A stretch of 64,000 nucleotides of DNA, from positions 248,001 to 312,000 of the forward strand of contig CBFFRP010000296.1 in assembly GCA_965644295.1 (NCBI GenBank), read 5' to 3'. Positions 49,611-63,109 of the stretch are shown here, one piece after another. A model generated the notes under the pieces. The model was not told the origin of the DNA and searched no databases. It worked only from the letters and a program-made list of their open reading frames with translations. The position numbers and the translations under genes were made by a program. How positions within the stretch are numbered: position 1 is the stretch's first letter; each line of letters opens with the position of its first letter. This stretch comes from Paraphysomonas bandaiensis. Taxonomy: Eukaryota; Protista; Chrysophyceae.

Positions 49611-50189
49611 CGGTACTCATCCCCCGCTCAATATGGAATGGATGTTAGCCCTTCGGGATCCATGCTCGTTCAGTCAGGGGGACGTCAGTCAGGTAAGGCT
49701 TTGGAGGATTGTGAGGGGTACATGATTCTGTATTATTGTTGTCGAGGCGTAGGCCTAGGTTCTAGATCATCATGAGAAGTTCGCAATTTGGACCTGGGGC
49801 GCAGAAATTCCTTAAGAAAGTTCATTTATGCACAGCACTCGAATAAGAAGATACCAGAGGTGGGGTTCCACATTTGCTATATATAATTGACAGCTATTTG
49901 CTTCTATCTAGAAGTCGAGGTAATACCAAAACCTCCTGGTTTTTGATGTAAAACCTGGTGAAATTTTTGATGATGGTTGGAAAGGGGAATAACTATGCAC
50001 AATAAGTAACTACGAAGATATAATAACACTATGAAAAGTATTATTTATAATATTTTTTACTAATTTCTTCCATAATACTTCGGTTTTACAGCAAAAAAAG
50101 TCACCGACTACACATATATATTACATACAGTTCACAAGTATGAGCTATACCCATCTCACATCTCACTAGATCCGTCAACTGTACCATCT

Positions 50190-52455
50190 ATGCTACATGA
50201 GCAAAGAGAGCAACAGGAACAGAGGGAAGTAATTGCAGTCTCCTTGTCACCGAGAGCTCGACGTCAACTACGGCAGATGAACCCCACGGACCGTCGACAA
50301 CTCAGGCTCCATATGTGCGACATGAGCAGAGTCTATCGCCTCACCCTCAGACCCTCAGCCCTTCGCACACAACAACATATCCCAAGTGATGGATACTGCG
50401 CATACAGCACACTCTATCATCTGCACATTCTTGCTTCAAGCAGGCGACACACTCGCTCCTGTCTGAAATTAGACCTCAAACAACGCAAGGACCGTCACAC
50501 GCTAGCATCTTTTATAAATACATTAGGCACCCAAGCGTTCGACACAATGCAACGGGAGTGCATGGCCCATCACACACTTCAGCCACTACGACATAAGTTG
50601 GATCACGCACAGGCCGCACTTTTAATACCTGCCAAAACAACATACACTACGGAGGACGACATAACTCACTGGCTCTCAGTGCGAGAGGTCCACCTTTTAG
50701 CCTCTACTATCAACCCCTGCACGACGTGGGCGCAAAATGGTAATTATCTCAGCATTGTAGGTATCCCTACTGACAAAGTAGCTTATAACATCGCATGGAA
50801 GGTGGAGGAACTTAGGAACGCTATTCGTGATAACTACTACCATGTCATACTACAAGATGCTCACTACTTCCTCTTAGACCCTGCCGGTCTTTCTACTGCC
50901 CTAGACAACGCCCTACTATCTCTTGAAAACACCTTGGCCACCAGTATACTCTCAACGTCTGACCCCATCGCTCCACCTACACTTCCCGCGGACTCAATCA
51001 CGAACAACAATAGGACATCAAAGACGACCAGCACCAGAACAACCTCGTCCAGCAGCACCAAGTTAGCACGAACAAATCGACAGATTCTGCAGGCTTCAAC
51101 CCCTGGAGCACTACCATCGCACAGGAAGATGCAGTTGAAACACGCCCAAACTGCGTTGACAAGTCGATGCCAGCCAACCCGGAAAGCCAAAAAGGTCGTA
51201 AATTACGATGAAAGTGACCAACCAACGAACCTTCACAACTCACACCAATCCACGACCACACGAACGATCAGACCAACTCCAGCACTTGATACCACCAGCT
51301 GGGACAAGGACTGGTCAAGAAAGTTCTACATTGCGTACGCCGATAACACTGCCAAAGGACTATCCCTTTATGCGAAGAACACATTCCCAGCAGACGTCAT
51401 CATTGCTGAGTACAAAGGCAAACGCTATCCACTAACAAAGCTGAGTCAGTCTGCAAGGCGTTCTGATTACATAGTTCAAGACAGTACTGGTACCTTCGCA
51501 ATAGATGGCTTTGACCAAGTCCGACAATGTGTAACATGCGAAGCTGGGTATATTAATGACCCCCTAGCCACAAACATGGCTAATGTCAAGTTTGTCACGA
51601 AAAATAAACGCCTCTATGTCCGTACAATACGTCCCATTGCTAAGGATGAAGAACTTCTCATCAACTACGGGCATCATTACTGGTGTGATCAACGCTGGCC
51701 ACTTGAGATATTAATCCAAGCCAGGGCTGCGTACGACAGCGACATAGGCGGTGCCAATAAAGCAGTATGGGACAGACTCCTTGCAGACAAGAGTGGAACT
51801 CCTACAGAGACCTCCAGCAGCATCCCCAAGGCTCCCTCGGGAGCAGCCATGGGACTCCGACTCTCCACATGGAACACAAATGGCAATCCGGCATCTCACA
51901 CAGGCAAAGTCCAAGCTATCATCCGACACTTTAAGCGGCAAAAATTGGACGTGCTCCTATTACAGGATGTCCGTCTAACAGAAACTCAGGCCAACTTCTT
52001 CACACGTATCATAGAAGATGCAATCCAGGGATCAAGAATATGCCTCTTCCTCAGCAAGCAGCCAAAACTGACTTCAAGAGACCCACTAATGGGGGGTACA
52101 GTAGTCATAATCAGCGAATACTGGAAGCGCCGTCTCGCCTTCACAAAGGCTGACTTTACGGGACTTGGTTTAGTGAGCCGACTAGAGTTCAAAACGTCGG
52201 TGGCGCACACCCTAGTACTAATAAGCGTCTATCTACCCCCGAAGCCATCCACGCCAGGCTCTTGCACATTATGGAGCAAATTGACCAAGCTAGGGAGAGC
52301 GTCCCGTGGTATCTGTACGGCTGACCCCTACAAGCTCCTATGCAACATCCTTACGAAATGGGTCACTAAAGCCAGAGCCAAGGACCATACTGTCATTGTC
52401 GCCGGCGACTTCAATGGCTCCATGGAGACAAATCCGAAAGGCAGAGACATACGAC
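50190..52455 (+). CDS. LINE ORF, 5' part: OTU-like protease, SET domain, N-terminal part of the APE endonuclease
   Basis: IPSDGYC..WLSVREVHLLA..AHY (OTU); KGLSLYA..IAEYKG..IDG..AGYIND..NVKF..IRPIAKDEELLINYGHHYW (SET); LSTWNTNG, LLLQD, SVYLPP and VAGDFNG (APE). Confidence 0.88.
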
Positions 52456-55400
52456 TGTGGGCTTGCATACATATGTGTATGTGTGCAAAGCAATACCCAA
52501 GTACAGAAGTACAAAATAATGATTATTATCGTATAATGAATCATGAATAATACTGTCTACAATATCAACGGCTAATAATACTGTCTACAATATCAACGGC
52601 TAATAATACTGTCTACAATATCAACGGCTATTGCTAATCCCAACAATCACATTCCCTACAGTTTGTATTCCTAACTACATGGTACACGTATACAATACAG
52701 TACTGTACTACTAATCATATAATACAGGACATGTACACGTATATATTCTATATGTAAGTGGATAGTCCTACACTACCTCCCCTTATAATTGATGTGTTAA
52801 TGTGTTATATTGACACTCAATTCTGTAAACTTTGTTATTAATCTTCTTCATCAGAAGAATAAACCACATTTCGAGGTAGTAAATTTCTTACATTTTCATC
52901 AGGATGTTGAGTTAGGAAATTTTGTAGAGCATACGTTTTTCTAACGTTAGCCCATGGTTCCCATGTAGGTTTTTCATACCCTATCCAATGTACTAGAAAT
53001 TTTATTTGACTTTTCGGACCTTTAGCTCGACCTTTTATTTTTGAAATATGGTCAATAGCATAAAAGTTTCCACCATCTTTACATGCCACTTGTAAGGGGT
53101 CAATAGTAGAGGGATCGTAATTAAATTCCCTTAATTTCTTTATATGATAGTCTTTATTACGTTTAGTAACAATATCTTGAAGAGTATATTTGTCTCCAAT
53201 AACATTGACTACTCGCATTGGACCTTTAAGATATGGTAATAACTTACTTGCCGGTCCAGGACGTAAAGCATTTTGTCTATGCTCAACTAACACATAAGAA
53301 TTTATTGGAAATTCTTTTGTTTGTATATTTGGTGCAGTTGCCATGTGGATTTCATCATGTTTGCGAAGATTTCGTCTTGCAACATCCATAATAGTGGACT
53401 GAACCTTTTGTATTCTATCTATCCAATGTGATAGCTTTTGTTCGTTCCCGTCCAAGTTCTCATTGTGTTCAATGAATAAACTCTTATCTAAATCTACTGC
53501 ATTCCCAAATAGAATACTAGCGGGAGTAACGCCGGTGCTTCTATGTTTAGAAGAATTCATAATTCTTTGTACTAAAGGTAGATACATTGACCAATTATTT
53601 AGTACATTTTTATCAAATATAATATTTCTTAAGTGCCTTAAAATTTCTTTATTAGCACGTTCCACTATAGCATTTTCTTCTTTAGAATACGCCATCGAAA
53701 ATGATTGATTACTTCCAACCATTTCTATCAATGATTTTGTTAAATCATCCACAAATGCTGGTCCAAGATCCGAATGAATCTCAATAGGTGCTCCATATCT
53801 ACCCAGGTGTTGAAGCAATCCCCTTTGCCGCCGCCATGGCAGTGAGATTCTTAGTAGGGATTAATTCTACCCACCTAGAAAAAGAATCGATAATCACTAA
53901 TATATTAGTGTATCCATCCTCATCTGGATGCAGACTCTGAATAAAATCCACTGCTATTCTTTGCATCGGGCCATATGTTGAGACAGTAAAGGGATGAGCA
54001 TTAATTATTGGTTTAATTCTACTCATCTTTTGACAACAAGGACAAGTTTTAATAAATTTTGTCACATGTGCCCCTTGCTTTGACCATTTATGACCATTGT
54101 CTCGTAATTTTTGTATTGTACGATCAATACCATGATGACCTGTAACATTGTTATGAAATCTTTTAATAATTTCCCATTCCTTGTTTGGAACTTTAATATC
54201 GGGAATTAGGGAAGCACATTTTGTTTCCATTTTAGATTCTAATGCACATAGTCTACTAAATGCATCAGCAACAACATTATCAGATCCTTTAATATCACAT
54301 AGATCATAATCATATGCTTGGAAACATTTCAACCATCGCTGAACTTTCTTATCCTTAGCGTAATCAGTTCTCAACTGAGTAATATTTTTATGATCTGTTT
54401 TGATCGTAAAGTATCTATACCTTAATAGGTAGTCCCATTTATCTAAGGCATAGTATATAGCATATCCTTCTTTCTGAGGTGTATCCCAATTCATCATTCT
54501 TTCATCGAATGTTTTACTGAGAAATCCTATTGGACGTTCTACACCATCTACTACTTGGTAGAGGTATGCTCCTATTCCATAATCAGATGCATCGGTCAAT
54601 AAATATATTGGTGACTCGTCATCAATGAAAAATAATGTTGGACATTCATGGATCATCAATTTGATCTTTTCAAATGCTTCATTGGCATCCTCTGTCCATT
54701 GTAGACGTTTACGTCTATGATAGTTGAGAAGCATTTTATTTAACGGTCTCACCACTAAGGAGTGGTTGTGCACGTGATCCCGAAAATAATTTGCCAATCC
54801 GAGGAAAGATTTTAGACCCTTCATAGTTTCAGGCTTTGGGAAATTTAATACACTATCCAGACGTTCTCTAGTAAAGTGTAACCCTTCCTCATTTAGAGTA
54901 TGTCCTACATATTGTACTTCGGACTCTCCTATTTTCACTTTCTCAGGATTAATGTAAACATTGTATTTCCTGAAGCGTTCTAGAACTTTAACGTAATTTT
55001 CAATTAGTTCATCTTCTGTAGAAGCATATATAATCAGGTCATCTAGATATAATTCACATATGAACATAATCAACCCGGCAAGCACAATTGTTGTTAATAC
55101 TCGTTGAAAGTATGATGGAGCACCACTCAAACCCATGGGTAGTCGGAGCCATTCGAATACTCCCCAGAAGGTTATAAATGCCGTCCACTTTCTCGAGTAC
55201 TCTGAAATTTTAGCCTGGTAATAACCAGATACTAAATCCAGAATTATGAAGTATTTGGGTTTCTTAGACCCAATACGTTCTAACATTTCTTTGATGTTAG
55301 GTATTGGCCAACGTTCCCTCTGTGTGTGCTTGTTTAGACCTTTATAGTCTACACAGAATCGCCATTTATCATTTGGTTTGGGAACTAATAATACCTGGCT

Positions 55401-58040
55401 ATAATAAGGAGCCGTACTTGGTTGTATTATTCCATGCTCCACAAATGTATCGATTTGCTTTTTACAAGCATACTGTCGTACTCGATCCATCTTTCGTGGC
55501 GGACCACAATGTTTTGGTTGTTCCCAAGCATCCCTATCTACCTCTAATTCAAAAGGTGGAACATCCATTGGCATATCCGACACTGTGGTTTTAAATCTAT
55601 CCTTATAGATTTCATGGATTTCTCTCACCCTCCTTTGTAAAGATTCGGGACCAGAGATTTTAGTTGGTAACGTAGTACCTTCTACTTTTTCCTGAGTATT
55701 TGTAACTATTTCTTCTGGGATTGACTCCAGATAGTTATCTCTAATCTCGCCTATATCTTCCTTTTCATATGCACTTATACGCATGGATGATATTGGAGGT
55801 GAATACATAGTACTAACCAAGCTATTACTTGTAAGTAAATTATTATTATAACTAAGGTGTTCCTTAGCTTGGCGCCTTAATGTTTCCATGTTATTATAAC
55901 ATGTGGCTCTCTCACTAATATGTTCCGAGAGAAGCTGAGTCTTCTCAGCATGGCCCGCGGCCGTAGCTAGCATTTTCCCTGCTAACTCTCTTTCCATAAA
56001 GTGAGATGGAAAATGATCAACTAATCTATATTTCTTGATAGTTTCTCTACCAATTATGATATCAAAGGTGCTATCTATTATCAAACATTGCAACTCAATA
56101 TCAAGAGTATTGTTATACTCATCAGTTAATCTTATAGTTATTATCATATATTGCTTGCTACTACAACAAGCATTATCAAGCGCACTACAAATTTTAATGT
56201 TACACTCGTGCAATGGAATATTATACCTAGCAACTAACATATCAGCAAGTTCTTGGTTAATGAAATTATTCCCAGTAGCCCCCGTGTCCAATAAGGCTTT
56301 AGCCCTTAGATTTTCCTTTACCTGTTGTACATTGACATCAGCTTTAGGACATACAAAGACATCGAGCATATCATTATTCATGTCAATAGCATTTATATAT
56401 AAACACTTAGGGCATGATAACTTACTTGTTTTCGATCTCGGAGGACCATCAGGATTCTCCACATAAGGGCAGGTACTCCAACCCATAGCCGCATATTTTT
56501 TGCCCTGTGTGGAATCTTTCCATGGCTTCTTTTCATGGTTAGCCCATGCACAGGTTTTGCGGGTGCAGTCACCTTTATGAAGATTACCGCATATCCAACA
56601 TGCTTCCTTAGTATCAGTTGTTGCTTTAGTACTTGAGGATGAGCTGGAGGATGAAGTTTTTGTAGTCTTAGACTTGTTAGACTTAGACGTTTCTTTGGAA
56701 TCCAATTTAGTTTCCATCCTCTTTACTTTTCTCACAGCTTGACTATAGTCATTGTTAAGCTCTCGCACCTTTCTACAGAATGCTCCGAAATCTTTTGGTG
56801 CAGATTGACCTTGGCCTATATCCGCTATAAATTTCTCTTTGGCATCCTTTCTGAAGGAATGTCCGCCCACAAGTTTAATGTTTTTCTTGAGGGTTTTGAC
56901 TATGGTATCCGAGGCTACCTCTGTGAGACTTGCCTCCGGAATGAGCTTATAAAGCTCATTCAGACGTCCATATTCTTTTAAGAATACTTTAGGAACATGA
57001 ATATCCACCTTAACCTTTGGTCCAATGATATTATCTATGAACCTAGGAAGAGGCTCCAATGTATCAGAGTATCGCTCCTCTTCCTCTAGAAAGGCTTGCT
57101 TTAACCACTGAATCAATTCCTCAGTAGTTACAATGTTTGGATCTAGCCAGTCCTCGTCAGACTCATCTCCAAAATCCTGCTGTCGCTGAAACTGAAGCAT
57201 ATCACGCACTGTTGGTGCCATGATTTCTGACCTTATGAATTTTGTCCCTTTAGGATCTCTTTTCGAGAGATTTTCACAAAATTCGATGATATCCTCATCT
57301 TGCACACTACCTAAGTAGGGAATAGAGTCGGTATTGATTACTTCATGTGGAGTGGATTCCGTCGCAATGACTTCATTCAAGTCAATGCGCTCACTCCTGT
57401 TGGGGTGCGGATCTCCACTCCTTTGCTTCTTTCTCTTTGGTTGAGAAGAAGAGAGCTCACGAAATGATACTCCACTCAATTCTCCTTCCGCCTCTACTGA
57501 TGTTTCAGTTTGAGGAGAAGATTGCATTTGAGATGATGTTGTTGCATCTCTTGCTCGTTTTCGAGAGGATTCTCTCTCTCTTTTCGTCTTTTTAGACGAA
57601 GAACCCGAAGCAGCTAACAATTCCTCTATTTGAGGAGCTGCTTTTATTTTGCTTCTCTTACTTTCCCCCATAATATTGTTATATCACAGAGATTGAGTAC
57701 TACTTATTAAGTAATATTACTGTGGGCTTGCATACATATGTGTATGTGTGCAAAGCAATACCCAAGTACAGAAGTACAAAATAATGATTATTATCGTATA
57801 ATGAATCATGAATAATACTGTCTACAATATCAACGGCTAATAATACTGTCTACAATATCAACGGCTAATAATACTGTCTACAATATCAACGGCTAATGCT
57901 AATCCCAACAACAATCACCTTCCCTACAGTTTGTATTCCTAACTACATGGTACACGTATACAATACAGTACTGTACTACTAATCATATAATACAGGACAT
58001 GTACACGTATATATTCTATATGTAAGTGGATAGTCCTACA
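52456..58040 (-). mobile_element. Ty3/gypsy chromovirus; LTRs 52456-52772 and 57721-58040; TSD CGAC
   Basis: TG...CA LTRs differ by 2 substitutions and a 3-bp indel; CGAC at 52452-52455 and 58041-58044; PPT GGGGAGGTAG on the minus strand next to 52772; each LTR has 3 x 28-bp repeats (52546-52629, 57811-57894). Confidence 0.97.
52838..57671 (-). CDS. Gypsy gag-pol (Zn knuckle, protease, RT, RNase H, integrase, chromodomain) with a single 1-nt frameshift at ~53820
   Basis: CWICGNLHKGDC, LLDTGA, WRFCVDYK, YLDD, TDASDYGIG, H..GHHG..CPCCQ, VDFI/SDLG/VERAN (DDE), GPMRV, and FLVHWIGYEKPTWEP (chromodomain). Confidence 0.95.
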
Positions 58041-58044
58041 CGAC

Positions 58045-61000
58045 CACTTGCCGACAAACTCCAACTGGCTGCACCACTCCATGAGCTTCTCCTACCCAGG
58101 AAAACATATCATACCTTCCACAGATTAGACAAAGGAATATCGCGGATCGATCATATTCTACACACGCCGTTACTTCCGAACATGTCTGTTACGGACACTG
58201 GCTGCCTTGACTCCCCCTCACTACTCGCAGCAGCCTTCGATCATCGACCGGTCTGGGTCGGTTTCACTGTACCAGTCAATCTTGACCCTCGACCACCTGA
58301 GTCGCACCTCCGAATCCCCCCCCGTCTCAATGTAAACCCGAAGGACTCCAAGGAAGTACAGGCATACACCGCAAGACTCCTCCAACTTCATGCACAACTA
58401 CCACATTTAGACAACGGATCGTCTGCCATACTCCCTCCTGAGGTGGCAGCCAACAGACTAGCGGCCATCCATCACATAACCCTCCAGGCTTCGCTTGAAG
58501 CGAAGCGTCCTGCATGTACTTATAGCACACGACTACACGAACGTTGTCAGCGCAAACGCTCAAAGTTCAAGAATGGCTTTTCCCCGGAAATGAGAGTAAT
58601 ACAAGAAGGAATGATCATGGTTTTGCGGATTATCCAAAAGATGTTCAATTCTGCCGGATACAAACGGCTTGGATGGCGCGGCCCCCCGGCAACCACCCCC
58701 ACCCACGAAATCATCACTGCATGGTTCATCCGATGGGACTCCTATCTCAGGAGTTCTCAGGGTCACATCAAAGGCATATCAGACATCAACTTCTGGTGCA
58801 GCCATCGCAACGCGGACCCACGAGTAATCCTGGGTTGGAACGAAAAGCAAGCCACCAAGAAAAACCTTCTCCGAATTGCCTTGCGACTGAGAGGACTTCT
58901 TCATGGAAGAGCCAGGACAGAAATGCGGACTAGACTCACGGCTCGCACCAATCAGATGGAGGCACTGCTACAGCAGAAAAGACTTCAAGCAATTCTTCAG
59001 AAAATTGGTCTCAAGGTCAAAACACCACTCCGACTTACCACGGTGAAAACAACTGACGGACACATCCTCACAACACCGCAAGACATTCATGAAGGCATTA
59101 ATGCGCACTTCCGTGAACATCATGCCAAACCTCCTGGACTTGACCCTGTAGCACAACAGCTCCAGGATGACCCTACATGGTGGAAATCCCTTCTTGATCC
59201 GGGCTCAGCGACATGCCAGGAACCACTCCACCCCCGCTCGAAAATCCCTCTTCCCCTGCAACTGGGGTTACGACGGGCCCTTTGTACCAAGACCACTCCG
59301 GCCATGGCAGCCACACTCAAATCTACTCTTGCAAAAGACATCACCCAGGATGAATTCTACTGCACACTTCACTCTCTCTCCTTCAACCGCGCGCCTGGAC
59401 CCTCAATGGTCTCCTCCAACATGGTCAAATCCTGGCCACCGGTAGTTCAGCGAGAGGCTTACATCCTCACCAGATCTCTCTGGAAACATAAACATGTGCC
59501 CATTTGGTGGAGAGACAGGGTAATGTCTCCCATTCTCAAGAAACCAGGAGAATCCTCCCTCAATAATCTCCGACCGATTGGTCTGCTTGAAGTCAGTAGG
59601 AAAATATTAACAAGGATAATCACTCATAGAATTCTTACCGTATGGGAGGAACAGAAAGTTTTGCATCCGTCCCAGCATGGTTATCGCTGGAGGAACGGGA
59701 CGGACACAGCGATACTAAGGGTACTCGCGGCTGCAGAAGAAGCAAGACGAAAAGGCGACCAGCATATATGTACACTCTGGGACTTCAAGAAGGCCTTCGA
59801 CTCAATTGCGCCTAACCTCATGCGTCTCGCGTGGGCACGACTGGGCGTTCCGGACGATGTAGTTGACTGGTTTGGCAACTTAGATGCCGGCGGTCTAACA
59901 TTTCCCTGGACACCATTCATGGCAAACAACATAGAGCCACGTTCTCTCCTTGACCTCCTGTCCGCAGACGGCCACTTCATTGCACTATTCAGTCTGGGTT
60001 TCGAAGCCGAAAGGGGTATCACCCAAGGGGGCACAGAATCCACATGCGCCTGGGTGGCACTCTACGACATCCTTCTCACGTGGCTGGACATTGAACTGTC
60101 AACAACGAGTCCAACGTTACCAACTATTCAACTCACGACTCCGACTACCGGCGAAATAAAGATCTCCTTCGCGGATGATCTTAACACAATAGCTAAATCC
60201 ATACACGCTGCCCAACTCATTGCCCAACAAATATCTGCGTTCTGCGTACTTTCGGGAATGGAACTCTCTATCCCCAAAGTAGTTTGCACAGTGTTTCCGA
60301 TCCTACAAGATTCCAACAAGTCCTCCGACCCCATTGGCTACATCATTCTCTACGACTGGTCGTGGCGTCCACACCCAGTCCCTATCCAAACATCACTAGA
60401 GTCGATACATTACCTCGGAGCAGACCTTCCTCTCACAATCACAGACAAGGCCTCCCATGATTGGTGTCTAAAATACCTGAAAGTCGTGACCACACACCTA
60501 GGGATTAAACAGGCCTCAGCCGGCTGTAAAGTCATGGTTATCGAGACCCAAATCATACCGACTTTGCTCTATAGAGCCACCAAAGCTTCATGGCCGCTAC
60601 ACTGGTACAGAGAAATTGACGCTGCTTGCGCAACCCTCTACAGAAAGGCCCTCAGTCTAGGCCCTGGATACCCCACGGAACTGATCTACCTCTCACTCAA
60701 GCACAACGGATTAGGTATGAAACGTTTCTCAGACTCGGCGCAGGAGCAAAAATGGGGATCTCTACAGCGCGCAATAACCCTCGGGGGAGAAGCAGGTCAA
60801 GCAGCACATTTTCTACTCACTCAGACAACAGAGCCACAGCCCCAATACCACCACTATGTTCTCAGCCTCAGGGAATGGGGAACGGAATTGGGCCTTACCC
60901 TTCAGCAACCTGAGCCCCCCGAACCACAGGATGAACACATGCTGACCAATCTAAAACAAGAACTCGGCCTTAATAGCGTCCAACCAGATACTTTCAAGGC

Positions 61001-62738
61001 AATCTTCACAGATGGATCATACACAGCCAGTGCGCTCTCCACGCGTCGCCTCACTCATGTCAATCCGCGAACACGATGGACACACCGAGGAGGTGCAGCG
61101 GTCGTCTACTTACCCCCAGAAAATGCCTGGGAAGATGGTACAACCATAATACTACGACTAGATACACCCTTTCGTGATGTGCCAGGTTTGGACTCATACG
61201 CATATGAACTCATAGGCACAGCCATGGGGCTTATACTCTCAACACGCATTCCCGAACACATAAGAAGCCACACAGACTGTCAGGCAGTGTGCACCCGTAC
61301 TGAGGAAGCACTCTCCACAAGACGCAGAGCTCTCGGTCACCGTGCAAAAGGGGTACTACTCGAAAGCATCGCGGCCAGTAGAGATTGCAAACGACAGGTG
61401 ACCTGGGTGAGGTCCCATCCCGAACGACGTACCACAGATGAAACGGAGTGGACGTTTGAGGACAAGGGCATCTATATTGCGGACGCAGTCGCGGGTGAAG
61501 ACTGGCATGAAGTCGATCGCATCCTTGGAAAAAATAACTACACTGTCTGTACAATTGCGATTGACAGTGCCATTGAACGCTTACTAACCGCTGGATTATG
61601 GCACTGGCGTTTGCACAGTACAAGACGGCCATACTACTCTAGCCCACTCCTTACTGATTTCCAAGATCTCTGCGACCTAAGGACACTTGAGAACTACACT
61701 TCAACCAGAGATCAACGCTACGGAAACAATCCTGATCGAGCGCCTGGCTACTGGACCAATAGCGGAGTACACCTCCCGCGCAAACTAGCTCAAGCGGATG
61801 GCAGTGCATCCAAAGACAAACTCAGCTCAAATCTACGCCAAAGAATTCTCAACACGGCACTGACATGGGACAAATCTTTCTGCATAGGGAGGAACCGGGC
61901 CAAAACCAAACAGGGGCTTGACCTGACCAAAGCCGCATGCTCTGACTGCGGGTTTCGACTAGATTCCCTAAAACATATGTGCCTCGACTGCACACATGAA
62001 TCCATCACCCAAATAAGGGAAACTGCATTTCAATCGCATAAAAATGTGCTACACGAAATACAGAGAACTCAGACCTTACCCAACTGGATCACATCTGCAC
62101 TACGGAGACTCTCCAGCAGAGCCTGGAATCCCTCCATCCCACAGGTCGAGAGATACTGGACTGGAACCATCACAGCAGCCCAACTGGAAACGGTCTTCGG
62201 AGATGACATACACAACCACCTGACGGCTCACAGTCTACGGAACCTAGAAACAGTGGTTATTAATCTCCTGCAACCGCTTTACACTGCAGCGAAGCTTATG
62301 TTACAGGATCGCGGTTGTCGCTATATCACCATGTCCAAAAGGCCGCCCAGGCTACTCCCGAGACCCCGTCCGAAACGCAGTCAGTCAAGACAACGTCCGA
62401 GAGTCCTTCGACTACTAGGGGTCCAACGAAGACCCCCCACAGCGTATCCGACTCCAGACACACGTGCACACCTCACAGGTCCTACCCGACAGAGCACTGG
62501 ACTGCCCAGACCTCCACAACGCCGACGGCTTCGACAACTCTATCTACACCCGCGGCCCCACAGGAGCACAGTAACACATACTACAAACCCAACTCCTCCT
62601 CCCAACAATCCCCACCACTCCCAACCCACACATCTGGAACTAGGTGCACTCAGGACCCTAATTCAGAATGCTGAGCCCCCTCCAAAACCAATGGAGACCC
62701 ATCCCAAAGGGAGACCCCCAGATCAAAAGCGCCGGTGA
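58045..62738 (+). CDS. LINE ORF, 3' part: APE C-terminus, reverse transcriptase, RNase H, CCHC finger, Arg/Pro-rich tail
   Basis: SRIDHI and FDHRPV (APE); APGP, LRPIGLL, QHGYR, DFKKAFDSI, GITQG, FADD and YLG (RT); FTDGS, YELIG, TDCQAV, WVRSH and ADAVA (RNase H); CSDC..DSLKHMCLDC. Confidence 0.93.
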
Positions 62739-62926
62739 GTCCACGGACACACGATAAAGGCGAATTTCATATCACACAAAAAGAACGGAAGTGGTTGCAC
62801 CTTGGTGCTTGCGGCGACGCACAAGCAGCTTTCGTAGCGTTAAATAGTAGGATAAAAGAGTTTGTATTGATTAGTTACGGGTAGTGGTCTAACTAGTATG
62901 ACTAGCATTCTTCTAGCCACTAATTG

Positions 62927-62971
62927 ATGCAAGGTCTCAACGCCTATTGCTAAATAATCAGACATTCACTA
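62927..62971 (+). repeat. 45-bp dispersed repeat, second copy at 34289-34333
   Basis: atgcaaggtctcaacgcctattgctaaataatYagacattcacta is present at both loci. Confidence 0.85.
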
Positions 62972-63109
62972 CTTCACTAGATCCTGATGTGCCAGTGGAG
63001 AACGAGAAGTAGTTACGATTCTTAGTCTATTACTTCACTAACTTAGTAATTAAGGGAGTACTACACTACATATAACTTCTATCAGCGGTATTATCTACTT
63101 AGGTATTAA

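Follow-up and report, generated by a model that had tools for sequence, protein, structure and literature searches.

The locus described here raises the question of whether a retrotransposon of Paraphysomonas bandaiensis carries a true SET domain as part of its own protein and, if so, what such a domain would do for the element. In the 64,000-nucleotide stretch of DNA that was analyzed (the window), a sequence-only reading had placed a SET domain at 51330-51690, inside the retrotransposon. Both points hold: the Pfam SET match (PF00856) lies within that span, at 51357-51671, and it falls in the ORF of a LINE, where it is continuous with the AP endonuclease (APE) and the reverse transcriptase (RT) in an intact copy.

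Organization of the LINE

The LINE copy in the window, a member of the family here called A, spans 50172-62973 on the forward strand, as do the other features described below except where indicated. It is 5'-truncated and is split by a Ty3/gypsy element with a chromodomain integrase, recognized by its ORFs and LTRs, that lies on the reverse strand at 52456-58040. The gypsy LTRs are about 310 bp long and 98.4% identical, the insertion is flanked by the target-site duplication CGAC (52452-52455 and 58041-58044), and LINE joins uninterrupted by the gypsy element are seen in contigs from public runs. The 5' part of the LINE copy occupies 50172-52455; contigs of four public runs extend upstream of 50172 with the sequence of the full-length element, and intact copies carry about 700 more N-terminal codons than the window copy. 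A 9-bp target-site duplication, TCACTAGAT, is found at 50163-50171 and again at 62974-62982, directly after the LINE 3' end. The 3' UTR and 3' end (62739-62973) are without a poly-A tail, and the end, ...CATTCACTACT, is common to the copies on C440 and C433. With APE and RT in one ORF, 5' truncation, a target-site duplication and dispersed copies, the element is an APE-type LINE.

The intact LINE copy has a single ORF of 3021 aa, continuous through SET, APE and RT. It begins with a long N-terminal region, which contains an OTU-like module, and continues with the SET, the AP endonuclease, the reverse transcriptase and a C-terminal knuckle. About 1080 aa of this ORF precede the SET, which is N-terminal to the endonuclease, and the numbering of aa 375-505 proposed earlier holds for the ORF of the 5'-truncated copy. 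In the window the APE is cut by the gypsy insertion into an N-terminal part (51855-52455, ORF residues 560-743, PF03372) and a C-terminal part in the sequence beyond it (58041-58265); Pfam finds the domain complete in the intact copy. The RT follows at 59382-60437, identified through the RVT_1 match (PF00078) in an identical intact copy. A putative RNase H-like region at 60996-61496 is suggested at the motif level by TDGS ... D motifs only and gave no Pfam match in the intact copy, while a C-terminal Cys/His knuckle (CxxC...HxxxxC), read from the translation at 61938-61991, is conserved in families A-C. Poly-A metatranscriptome contigs cover 51163-51539, in the SET region, with matches of 99% or better, though these come from RNA libraries, which can hold DNA.

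Two regions precede the SET in the window copy. The first, at 50232-50891, is a conserved module that is weakly OTU-like (DGYC ... AHY), modelled by AF2 with a pLDDT of about 65-85. It has no Pfam match, even at E 10. Its best VIA structure match is a viral OTU protease (Z 5.8, 140 aligned residues), and OTU proteases, the best match and five more, are the only VIA matches that span the whole module; their Z scores of 4.8-5.8 do not rise above the tool's stated noise range. BLASTP against the true OTU of P0113 gives E values of 0.003-0.01, and hhalign aligned only 15 columns with two true OTU domains at E 0.05; the assignment of the module as OTU-like is tentative. The second region, at 50958-51302, is a low-complexity, disordered linker (AF2 pLDDT <50 at ORF residues 257-380) that is poorly conserved between families.

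The SET domain

In the ORF of the window copy (786 aa, 50190-52550), the full PF00856 model (1-105/105) was matched at residues 390-494 with 38.5 bits and an E value of 1.7e-9, the Pfam cut-off for SET being 22.4 bits; matches above the cut-off are also found in LINE families A, B and C. The AF2 model of window positions 51270-51740 has a mean pLDDT of 90 and a pTM of 0.85, with secondary structure over residues 13-155. The model and Foldseek place the folded extent at 51303-51737, somewhat wider than the Pfam match because a C-terminal helix, WPLEILIQARAAY, at 51696-51734 is part of the fold. Foldseek matched the model to SET enzymes at E of about 2e-8, with 366 PDB matches at E<=0.001; 50 of 50 among the top PDB matches listed are SET or PR domains, led by the active SET enzymes LegAS4 of Legionella, SET7/9, SETD8 and MLL3/4 and by PRDM PR domains. 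Since C327, C447, C450 and C499 are the only cysteines in ORF residues 320-560, the domain is without a pre-SET or post-SET cysteine cluster, as had been claimed. A complex prediction of the SET with SAM and host H3(1-45) scored 0.00, giving no answer either way.

The match is far beyond chance, for the domain recurs in 86 matches in the genome and in four diverged LINE families (A-D). The stretch encodes a genuine SET-fold domain within the LINE polyprotein. The SET being a neighbouring host gene was also considered, and was rejected because the ORF is continuous through SET, APE and RT in the intact copy.

Motifs and the N-D clade

The sequence-only reading had listed three motifs, GLS, YINDP and EELLINYG..YW, and all read as it stated. 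Motif I, at 51357-51365, has G-L-S in place of GxG; it is G-L-S in families A and B and G-N-A in C and D, the first glycine being invariant. The second-position glycine of GxG is present in 123 of the 157 aligned SETs (150 hits plus 7 from this genome), and the departure specific to the LINEs is that second glycine only (Ser in the window copy, Ala in C and D). A Y-x-G motif (Y-K-G; Y48, G50) at 51411-51419 is nearly invariant in a 147-sequence alignment (at least 90% conserved). At 51555-51563, N-D-P replaces N-H-S/C and aligns with the NH of MLL3/4; throughout the clade described below the asparagine is kept and the histidine has become aspartate, and N-D-P is invariant across all seven of the seven transposable-element SETs of this genome. 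The C-terminal motif (E128, Y133, G134, Y137, W138) lies at 51648-51683, with EELLINYG at 51648-51671 and YW at 51678-51683; EELLINY aligns with EELTYDY of MLL4, and the motif also aligns with EEITISYGDDYW of vSET. The catalytic-position tyrosine, Y133, is invariant in 147 of 147 sequences, and at least 90% of them keep N96, E128, G134 and W138. In classical SETs the histidine of the NH motif and the second glycine of GxG both contact SAM.

YINDP, which had been called non-canonical, is not peculiar to this element. "N-D" and "YGxxYW" occur in almost every one of the 150 best among 8209 hits and mark, by sequence comparison, a large SET clade that numbers thousands of members; they are not a sign of decay. 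Members of this clade are compact and not flanked by Zn clusters; the N-H of classical SETs is N-D in them, and their YGxxYW is followed by a helix. They include other LINEs, Ty3/gypsy Pol proteins and giant-virus proteins; small relatives of the N-D type, some of them stand-alone, are encoded on giant-virus MAG contigs. No biochemical data on members of the clade were found in the literature.

Relatives and origin

SETs fused to APE and RT are also found in metagenomic LINEs, on contigs of other organisms, and in metagenomic relatives a true OTU domain (deubiquitinase) and a Ulp1 domain (deSUMOylase) stand next to the SET. By cluster look-up, the relatives are metagenomic, except for a partial protein of Symbiodinium microadriaticum that belongs to the gypsy-type clade. 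A homologue search with the SET region of the 786-aa ORF, in a length-filtered database without this genome's transposable-element proteins, returned one match, P0164. Within this genome, SETs related to that of the LINE sit between RNase H and integrase in three gypsy families. The same genome has at least seven silicon-transporter loci.

In trees, one branch sets the LINE-borne SETs apart and another the gypsy-borne SETs, and ten IMG/VR SETs fall outside both clades (FastTree, with weakly supported deep branches). The suggestion that the domain is of a viral-like type holds in part. The best sequence match among solved structures is the C-terminus of the chlorovirus protein vSET, and N-D relatives occur in giant-virus MAGs; on the other side, viral SETs are not nested with the LINE SETs in these trees, and by fold the domain matches cellular SETs (SET7/9, SETD8, MLL3/4, PRDM) and Legionella LegAS4 as well as it does viral ones. 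A direct giant-virus origin of the LINE SET was rejected as unsupported by the trees.

Copies, families and selection

At least 30 LINE copies are 97-100% identical, and the family is young and multi-copy. Three diverged families keep the SET at 49-68% identity; its amino acid identity between families is 0.70 (A/B) and 0.73 (C/D), compared with 0.75 for APE, 0.76-0.84 for RT and only 0.37-0.39 for the linker adjoining the SET. The dN/dS of the SET is about 0.13 (A/B) and 0.06 (C/D), values that are rough because synonymous sites are near saturation. By these comparisons the SET is about as conserved as APE and RT and is under purifying selection; this argues against the neutral decay of the SET motifs across copies that had been raised earlier. 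Among young family-A copies, with changes polarised by majority state, the shared changes in the SET are 4 non-synonymous and 3 synonymous, too few to inform on selection, and singleton changes show only mild constraint (ratio 0.53).

Possible roles of the SET

The reading that we favour, with somewhat better than even confidence, is that the SET is a selected lysine-methyltransferase module, integral to the polyprotein of an active LINE family, that acts in cis on chromatin near the insertion. It is best read as a selected and probably active lysine methyltransferase module, and since it is well folded and evolutionarily protected, an enzyme that marks proteins or chromatin is probably supplied by the element itself. 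We infer that the SET would bind SAM and methylate a lysine. Its target, in the likeliest case a histone tail, would be a chromatin protein at the site of insertion or close to it; such action in cis appears most likely because the SET adjoins the endonuclease, which engages chromosomal DNA during target-primed reverse transcription. The local mark could then favour the element, whether it blocks silencing by the host or sets up a form of chromatin that is tolerated.

One alternative is that the module only binds, the SET fold serving as a non-catalytic adaptor by which the LINE protein docks, for targeting or tethering, on a partner with a lysine, such as a histone tail. This would fit the departure of two SAM-contacting motifs from the classical form (G-L-S and N-D-P), as well as a weak secondary match of the window copy to the PR-domain profile PRDM2_PR (PF21549), which scores 23.3 bits, below the cut-off of 27 (family C reaches 29.1 and one gypsy SET 31.5); many members of the PR-domain family are poor enzymes, and purifying selection alone cannot tell binding from catalysis. 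We nevertheless consider it unlikely, as the invariance of the tyrosine (147/147) and the conservation of Y-x-G, Asn and Glu in at least 90% match the needs of catalysis and go beyond those of a docking surface, and N-D is common to thousands of proteins, including stand-alone viral SETs.

A second possibility, to which we give a similarly small weight, is an active enzyme that promotes retrotransposition by methylating a non-histone substrate. This could be a host factor of repair or defence, or the polyprotein or RNP of the element itself. The fold resembles those of SET7/9 and SETD8, which also methylate non-histone proteins, and the OTU and Ulp1 domains that stand beside the SET in metagenomic relatives suggest a toolkit for editing protein modifications in general; the location of the SET, which adjoins the DNA-engaging endonuclease in the LINE and is flanked by RNase H and integrase in the gypsy elements, is at least equally compatible with a chromatin target. 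That the SET is a decaying passenger, a host or viral fragment captured once and drifting neutrally or a neighbouring gene misjoined to the LINE, would agree with the mild constraint on family-A singletons, as expected of dead copies, but is very improbable given an ORF continuous through SET, APE and RT in intact copies of four families with saturated synonymous sites, conservation of the SET equal to that of RT and APE, and the same fusion in contigs of other organisms.

A broader form of the favoured reading, action of the SET in cis on chromatin, is put forward only tentatively: marine-protist retrotransposons may carry a portable chromatin-modification kit, in which the SET would be an active histone lysine methyltransferase marking nucleosomes at a new insertion so as to escape or steer silencing. 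The N-D SET would have been taken up separately by LINEs, Ty3/gypsy elements and giant viruses, accompanied by the OTU-like module here and by true OTU and Ulp1 domains in the metagenomic relatives. If true, a LINE with a lysine methyltransferase beside its endonuclease would deliver a writer directly to the integration site. A young multi-copy LINE in a small genome, together with the related gypsy SETs, would make it practicable to ask whether the chromatin state of mobile elements is set by the elements themselves, and the finding points to a large, biochemically uncharacterised N-D SET clade common to transposons and giant viruses.

Relationships to known systems

The chlorovirus protein vSET (PBCV-1 A612L) is a minimal H3K27 methyltransferase. 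Like the LINE SET, it is compact and has a Zn cluster on neither side of the SET core, and the C-terminal motif, EE-I/L-x-I-x-YG-xx-YW, is nearly identical. The vSET protein, however, stands alone, is 119 residues long, and keeps the classical NHS and GxG motifs, whereas the LINE SET forms part of a 3021-aa polyprotein, has N-D-P and G-L-S at these positions, and carries an additional helix at its C-terminus. SET7/9 (SETD7) and SETD8 (KMT5A) are among the best fold matches of the LINE SET, and instead of a Zn post-SET they likewise have a segment or helix with aromatic residues on the C-terminal side of the domain. Both are host enzymes that carry NH motifs and share only 17-21% sequence identity with the LINE SET, and the N-terminal MORN-like domain of SET7/9 is absent from the LINE.

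SymbioLINE-Dnmt is a marine-protist LINE that carries a writer domain, under purifying selection across many copies and with some transcription (de Mendoza et al. 2018, PMC5890265). It and other DNMT-carrying retrotransposons resemble the present LINE in carrying an epigenetic-writer domain kept under purifying selection; in sequence terms, here too the writer domain lies within the element and is conserved by purifying selection across lineages. In SymbioLINE-Dnmt a separate ORF1 encodes the writer, a C5 cytosine DNA methyltransferase, while here a predicted SET protein-lysine methyltransferase is fused in frame upstream of the endonuclease.

SET methyltransferases were counted among 823 TE-fusion gene models in the survey of Grau-Bove et al. 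2022 (bioRxiv 10.1101/2021.11.30.470311), in which SETMAR is the sole SET fusion discussed in the text; its supplementary table has one Symbiodinium microadriaticum model, 'SET RVT_1 DnaJ', LINE-like and in a SETD7/PRDM-related orthogroup. That model differs from the present element in being a single multi-exon table entry, without an endonuclease, a description, or an analysis of copies or selection. In the literature we found no account of the present family, nor of a SET domain within the polyprotein of any LINE or gypsy element, this one supplementary-table row being the sole trace.

Chromoviruses (Ty3/gypsy elements with a chromodomain integrase), one of which is inserted in the window LINE copy, likewise have a chromatin-interacting module on a retrotransposon protein. 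Transposons are usually regarded as targets of histone methylation, and the exceptions known to us among them carry readers (chromodomains, MBD) or DNA methyltransferases. The chromovirus chromodomain reads methyl-lysine, whereas the SET of the LINE would write it.

SET domain and its host element

The 786-aa ORF at 50190-52550 gives a full-length match to the Pfam SET model PF00856 (residues 390-494, model positions 1-105 of 105) that scores 38.5 bits, above the cut-off of 22.4, at E 1.7e-9 and is followed in the same frame by an Exo_endo_phos match at residues 560-743; a PRDM2_PR match is sub-threshold. The SET match, window positions 51357-51671, falls within the 51330-51690 at which a sequence-only reading had placed a minimal domain, and the motifs then read are all found in the translation: G-L-S at the GxG position (51357-51365), YINDP (its N-D-P at 51555-51563), EELLINYG (51648-51671) and YW (51678-51683), along with Y-K-G at 51411-51419. 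Pre- and post-SET cysteine clusters are absent, as had been stated, residues 320-560 of the ORF holding just four scattered cysteines. Given a 147-sequence alignment, AlphaFold2 models 51270-51740 with confidence (mean pLDDT 90, pTM 0.85) and adds a C-terminal helix, residues 145-155, so that the folded domain spans about 51303-51737. The top fold matches of the domain (E about 2e-8, TM 0.53-0.68) are LegAS4, SET7/9, SETD8, MLL3/4 and PRDM1/3/5, with viral SETs matching about equally well. Profile and pairwise alignments with MLL3/4 place G-L-S on GLG, YINDP on YINHS and EELLINY on EELTYDY, while the best sequence match among solved structures is the C-terminus of chlorovirus vSET.

The domain belongs to the frame of a LINE and is no separate gene. 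An intact copy (contig C440, 4173-13235, minus strand) has a 3021-aa open frame encoding about 1080 N-terminal residues with zero Pfam matches, then the SET, an AP endonuclease and a reverse transcriptase, with a Cys/His knuckle at its C-terminal end. The window copy is truncated at 50172, upstream of which contigs from four public runs carry on as the full-length element. Its 3' UTR (62739-62973) ends without a poly-A tail in ...CATTCACTACT, an ending common to other copies, and a 9-bp duplication, TCACTAGAT, flanks the copy. Its endonuclease is interrupted at 52456-58040 by a minus-strand Ty3/gypsy element whose integrase has a chromodomain at its C-terminus. This insertion has 98.4% identical LTRs of about 310 bp, the TSD CGAC and a pol split over two frames (53799-57671 and 52838-53818); the LINE join lacking it is visible in run contigs. 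The stretch 60996-61496, as read from its motifs, may be RNase H-like; Pfam makes no RNase H call there.

A conserved pre-SET module lies at 50232-50891, with the motifs IPSDGYCAY and QDAHY (a DGYC...AHY pair) and an AlphaFold2 model of pLDDT about 65-85. Viral OTU proteases are its best VIA matches (Z 5.8, 140 aligned residues) and the sole ones to cover it whole. An OTU domain was confirmed neither by Pfam, which found nothing, nor by hhalign, and the module is weakly OTU-like.

Copies, selection and transcription

Searched with 120 aa of the SET, the 62.6-Mb genome yields 86 matches, 13 of them protein-identical and about thirty 97-100% identical, the near-identical ones sitting mostly in long open frames; compared as DNA over 2.3 kb, 30 copies share 97.1-100% identity. 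Besides family A, to which the window copy belongs, three diverged LINE families have kept the SET: B (C143, 2795-aa frame; 68% amino-acid identity), C (C644, 3731 aa; 51%) and D (C426; 49%). In codon alignments of whole ORFs the SET equals the core enzymes in conservation, with amino-acid identities (A/B and C/D) of 0.70 and 0.73 for the SET, 0.75 and 0.75 for APE and 0.76 and 0.84 for RT; those of the SET-APE linker are 0.37 and 0.39 and those of the pre-SET region 0.56 and 0.51. SET dN/dS by Nei-Gojobori is about 0.13 (A/B) and 0.06 (C/D), rough values because synonymous sites are near saturation, and among young copies the changes in the SET are too few for a selection test. This conservation argues against neutral decay of the motifs, named at the outset as part of a refuting outcome. 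The domain is genuine and not in decay, and a folded SET in frame with the adjoining endonuclease is shown to be selected in several LINE lineages.

The 3731-aa family C ORF, whose SET lies at C644:7658-7972, has a second one near its N-terminus (C644:3665-4036, locus L047:1-1299; 24.0 bits versus a cut-off of 22.4), and an N-terminal extra SET likewise occurs at C566:348-719. Near the end of contig C505 (locus L050) a SET-containing family C segment stands in tandem with a period of 2178 bp, at 58045, 60223 and 62401.

In poly-A-selected marine metatranscriptome runs 33-37% of sampled words are present, and segments of the SET region (51163-51539) are matched by their contigs at 99% or more. 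This suggests that the region is transcribed, though RNA-library contigs can contain DNA; for expression, the multi-copy LINE and its single-copy flank allow no fair comparison.

Clade signature and distribution

A profile of seven transposon SETs from this genome, scored against 1.84 billion representative proteins, matched 8209 at E<=0.001 and 1067 at E<=1e-10. When the best 150 of the 8209 are aligned with those seven, the NH position is N-D in nearly all 157 rows (NDP 69, NDA 18, NDS 13, and others) and NHS in just 2; the catalytic-position Tyr is kept in 155 and a C-terminal YG-xx-YW in 132. Y133, this Tyr, is the sole fully invariant column of the 147-sequence alignment, where conservation also reaches at least 90% at each of G32, Y48, G50, Y67, N96, D97, N105, E128, G134 and W138. 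Judged from these alignments, the N-D form is a clade signature. Of the 157 rows, 123 have a canonical GxG, which leaves replacement of its second Gly -- by Ser in families A and B, by Ala in C and D -- as the one departure peculiar to these LINEs. The label "non-canonical", given earlier to the domain, holds for the second position of G-L-S, YINDP being of the clade-wide type.

Six of the best 150 matches also hold this LINE's endonuclease domain (P0003, P0009, P0030, P0061, P0113, P0119), P0061 and P0113 additionally matching its RT, and seven hold gypsy RT/RNase H or integrase (P0008, P0019, P0025, P0032, P0064, P0086, P0148); P0164, from an ENA metagenome, combines SET and endonuclease and is 68% identical. 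P0061 (3923 aa) and P0113 (3532 aa) are single giant LINE-type ORFs with RNase H and RT from ENA metagenome contigs (L072:2001-12599), and in them the SET adjoins a true OTU domain and a Ulp1/C48 protease domain -- three protein-modification-editing modules within one retrotransposon protein. Three gypsy families of this genome carry a SET between RNase H and integrase: those of C476 (L034) and C654 (L037), and a third (C119; L048:1178-5755), ordered RT, RNase H, SET, integrase, with at least 8 copies having 1526-aa Pol frames.

A maximum-likelihood tree has a branch (SH-aLRT 89) with the 11 LINE-borne SETs all to one side of it, and a 20-row clade (support 99) that contains the 8 gypsy-borne ones. 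Among giant-virus MAG contigs of IMG/VR, some (loci L052-L054, L062, L066) code for small stand-alone SETs with N-D and YGxxYW, others (L055, L057) for NH-type vSET-like proteins. The viral likeness proposed from the sequence has some backing in the vSET match and in these N-D proteins. In a FastTree phylogeny with weakly supported deep branches, ten giant-virus SETs fall outside both transposon clades, one being 59% identical to a "no-context" match.

Elsewhere in the genome three SET domains, together scoring 97.5 bits, follow one another in an 822-aa frame (C71:45013-47478; L049:1014-3479), and similar triplets lie at C132:52273-55468. Silicon-transporter (PF03842) loci, a gene set suggestive of a diatom, number at least seven: C348:104740, C406:325451, C398:55702, C150:402264, C149:227907, C298:538687 and C298:56663.

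Possible function and relation to known systems

The most conserved columns are those that catalysis would require -- the Tyr of ELxxxY, YxG, the Asn, the Glu and the C-flank aromatic -- and the domain would bind SAM and methylate lysine. Since the LINE polyprotein would engage chromosomal DNA during target-primed reverse transcription, the likeliest substrate would be the tail of a nucleosomal histone close to the insertion, and activity on histones is tentatively predicted. Activity on another protein is predicted as an unlikely alternative. The OTU and Ulp1 domains that accompany the SET in relatives suggest a toolkit with which host protein modifications in general would be edited. That the SET serves only in binding is similarly improbable. 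In classical SETs the NH His and the GxG Gly contact SAM; the NHxC motif is missing from active PR/SET enzymes such as PRDM9, and His-to-Asp therefore need not abolish activity.

A full-text literature search found no published description of a SET within a LINE or gypsy polyprotein. Grau-Bove et al. counted SET among 823 transposon-fusion gene models, and their supplementary table has one LINE-like "SET RVT_1 DnaJ" model, from S. microadriaticum, in a SETD7/PRDM-related orthogroup (bioRxiv 10.1101/2021.11.30.470311). Retrotransposon capture of chromodomains, MBD and DNMTs is established, including a Symbiodinium LINE (PMC5890265). Like that DNMT-carrying LINE, the SET-LINE is a retrotransposon with a captured epigenetic module, and with its predicted writer role it is a new form of a known phenomenon, the transposon with an epigenetic-writer domain.
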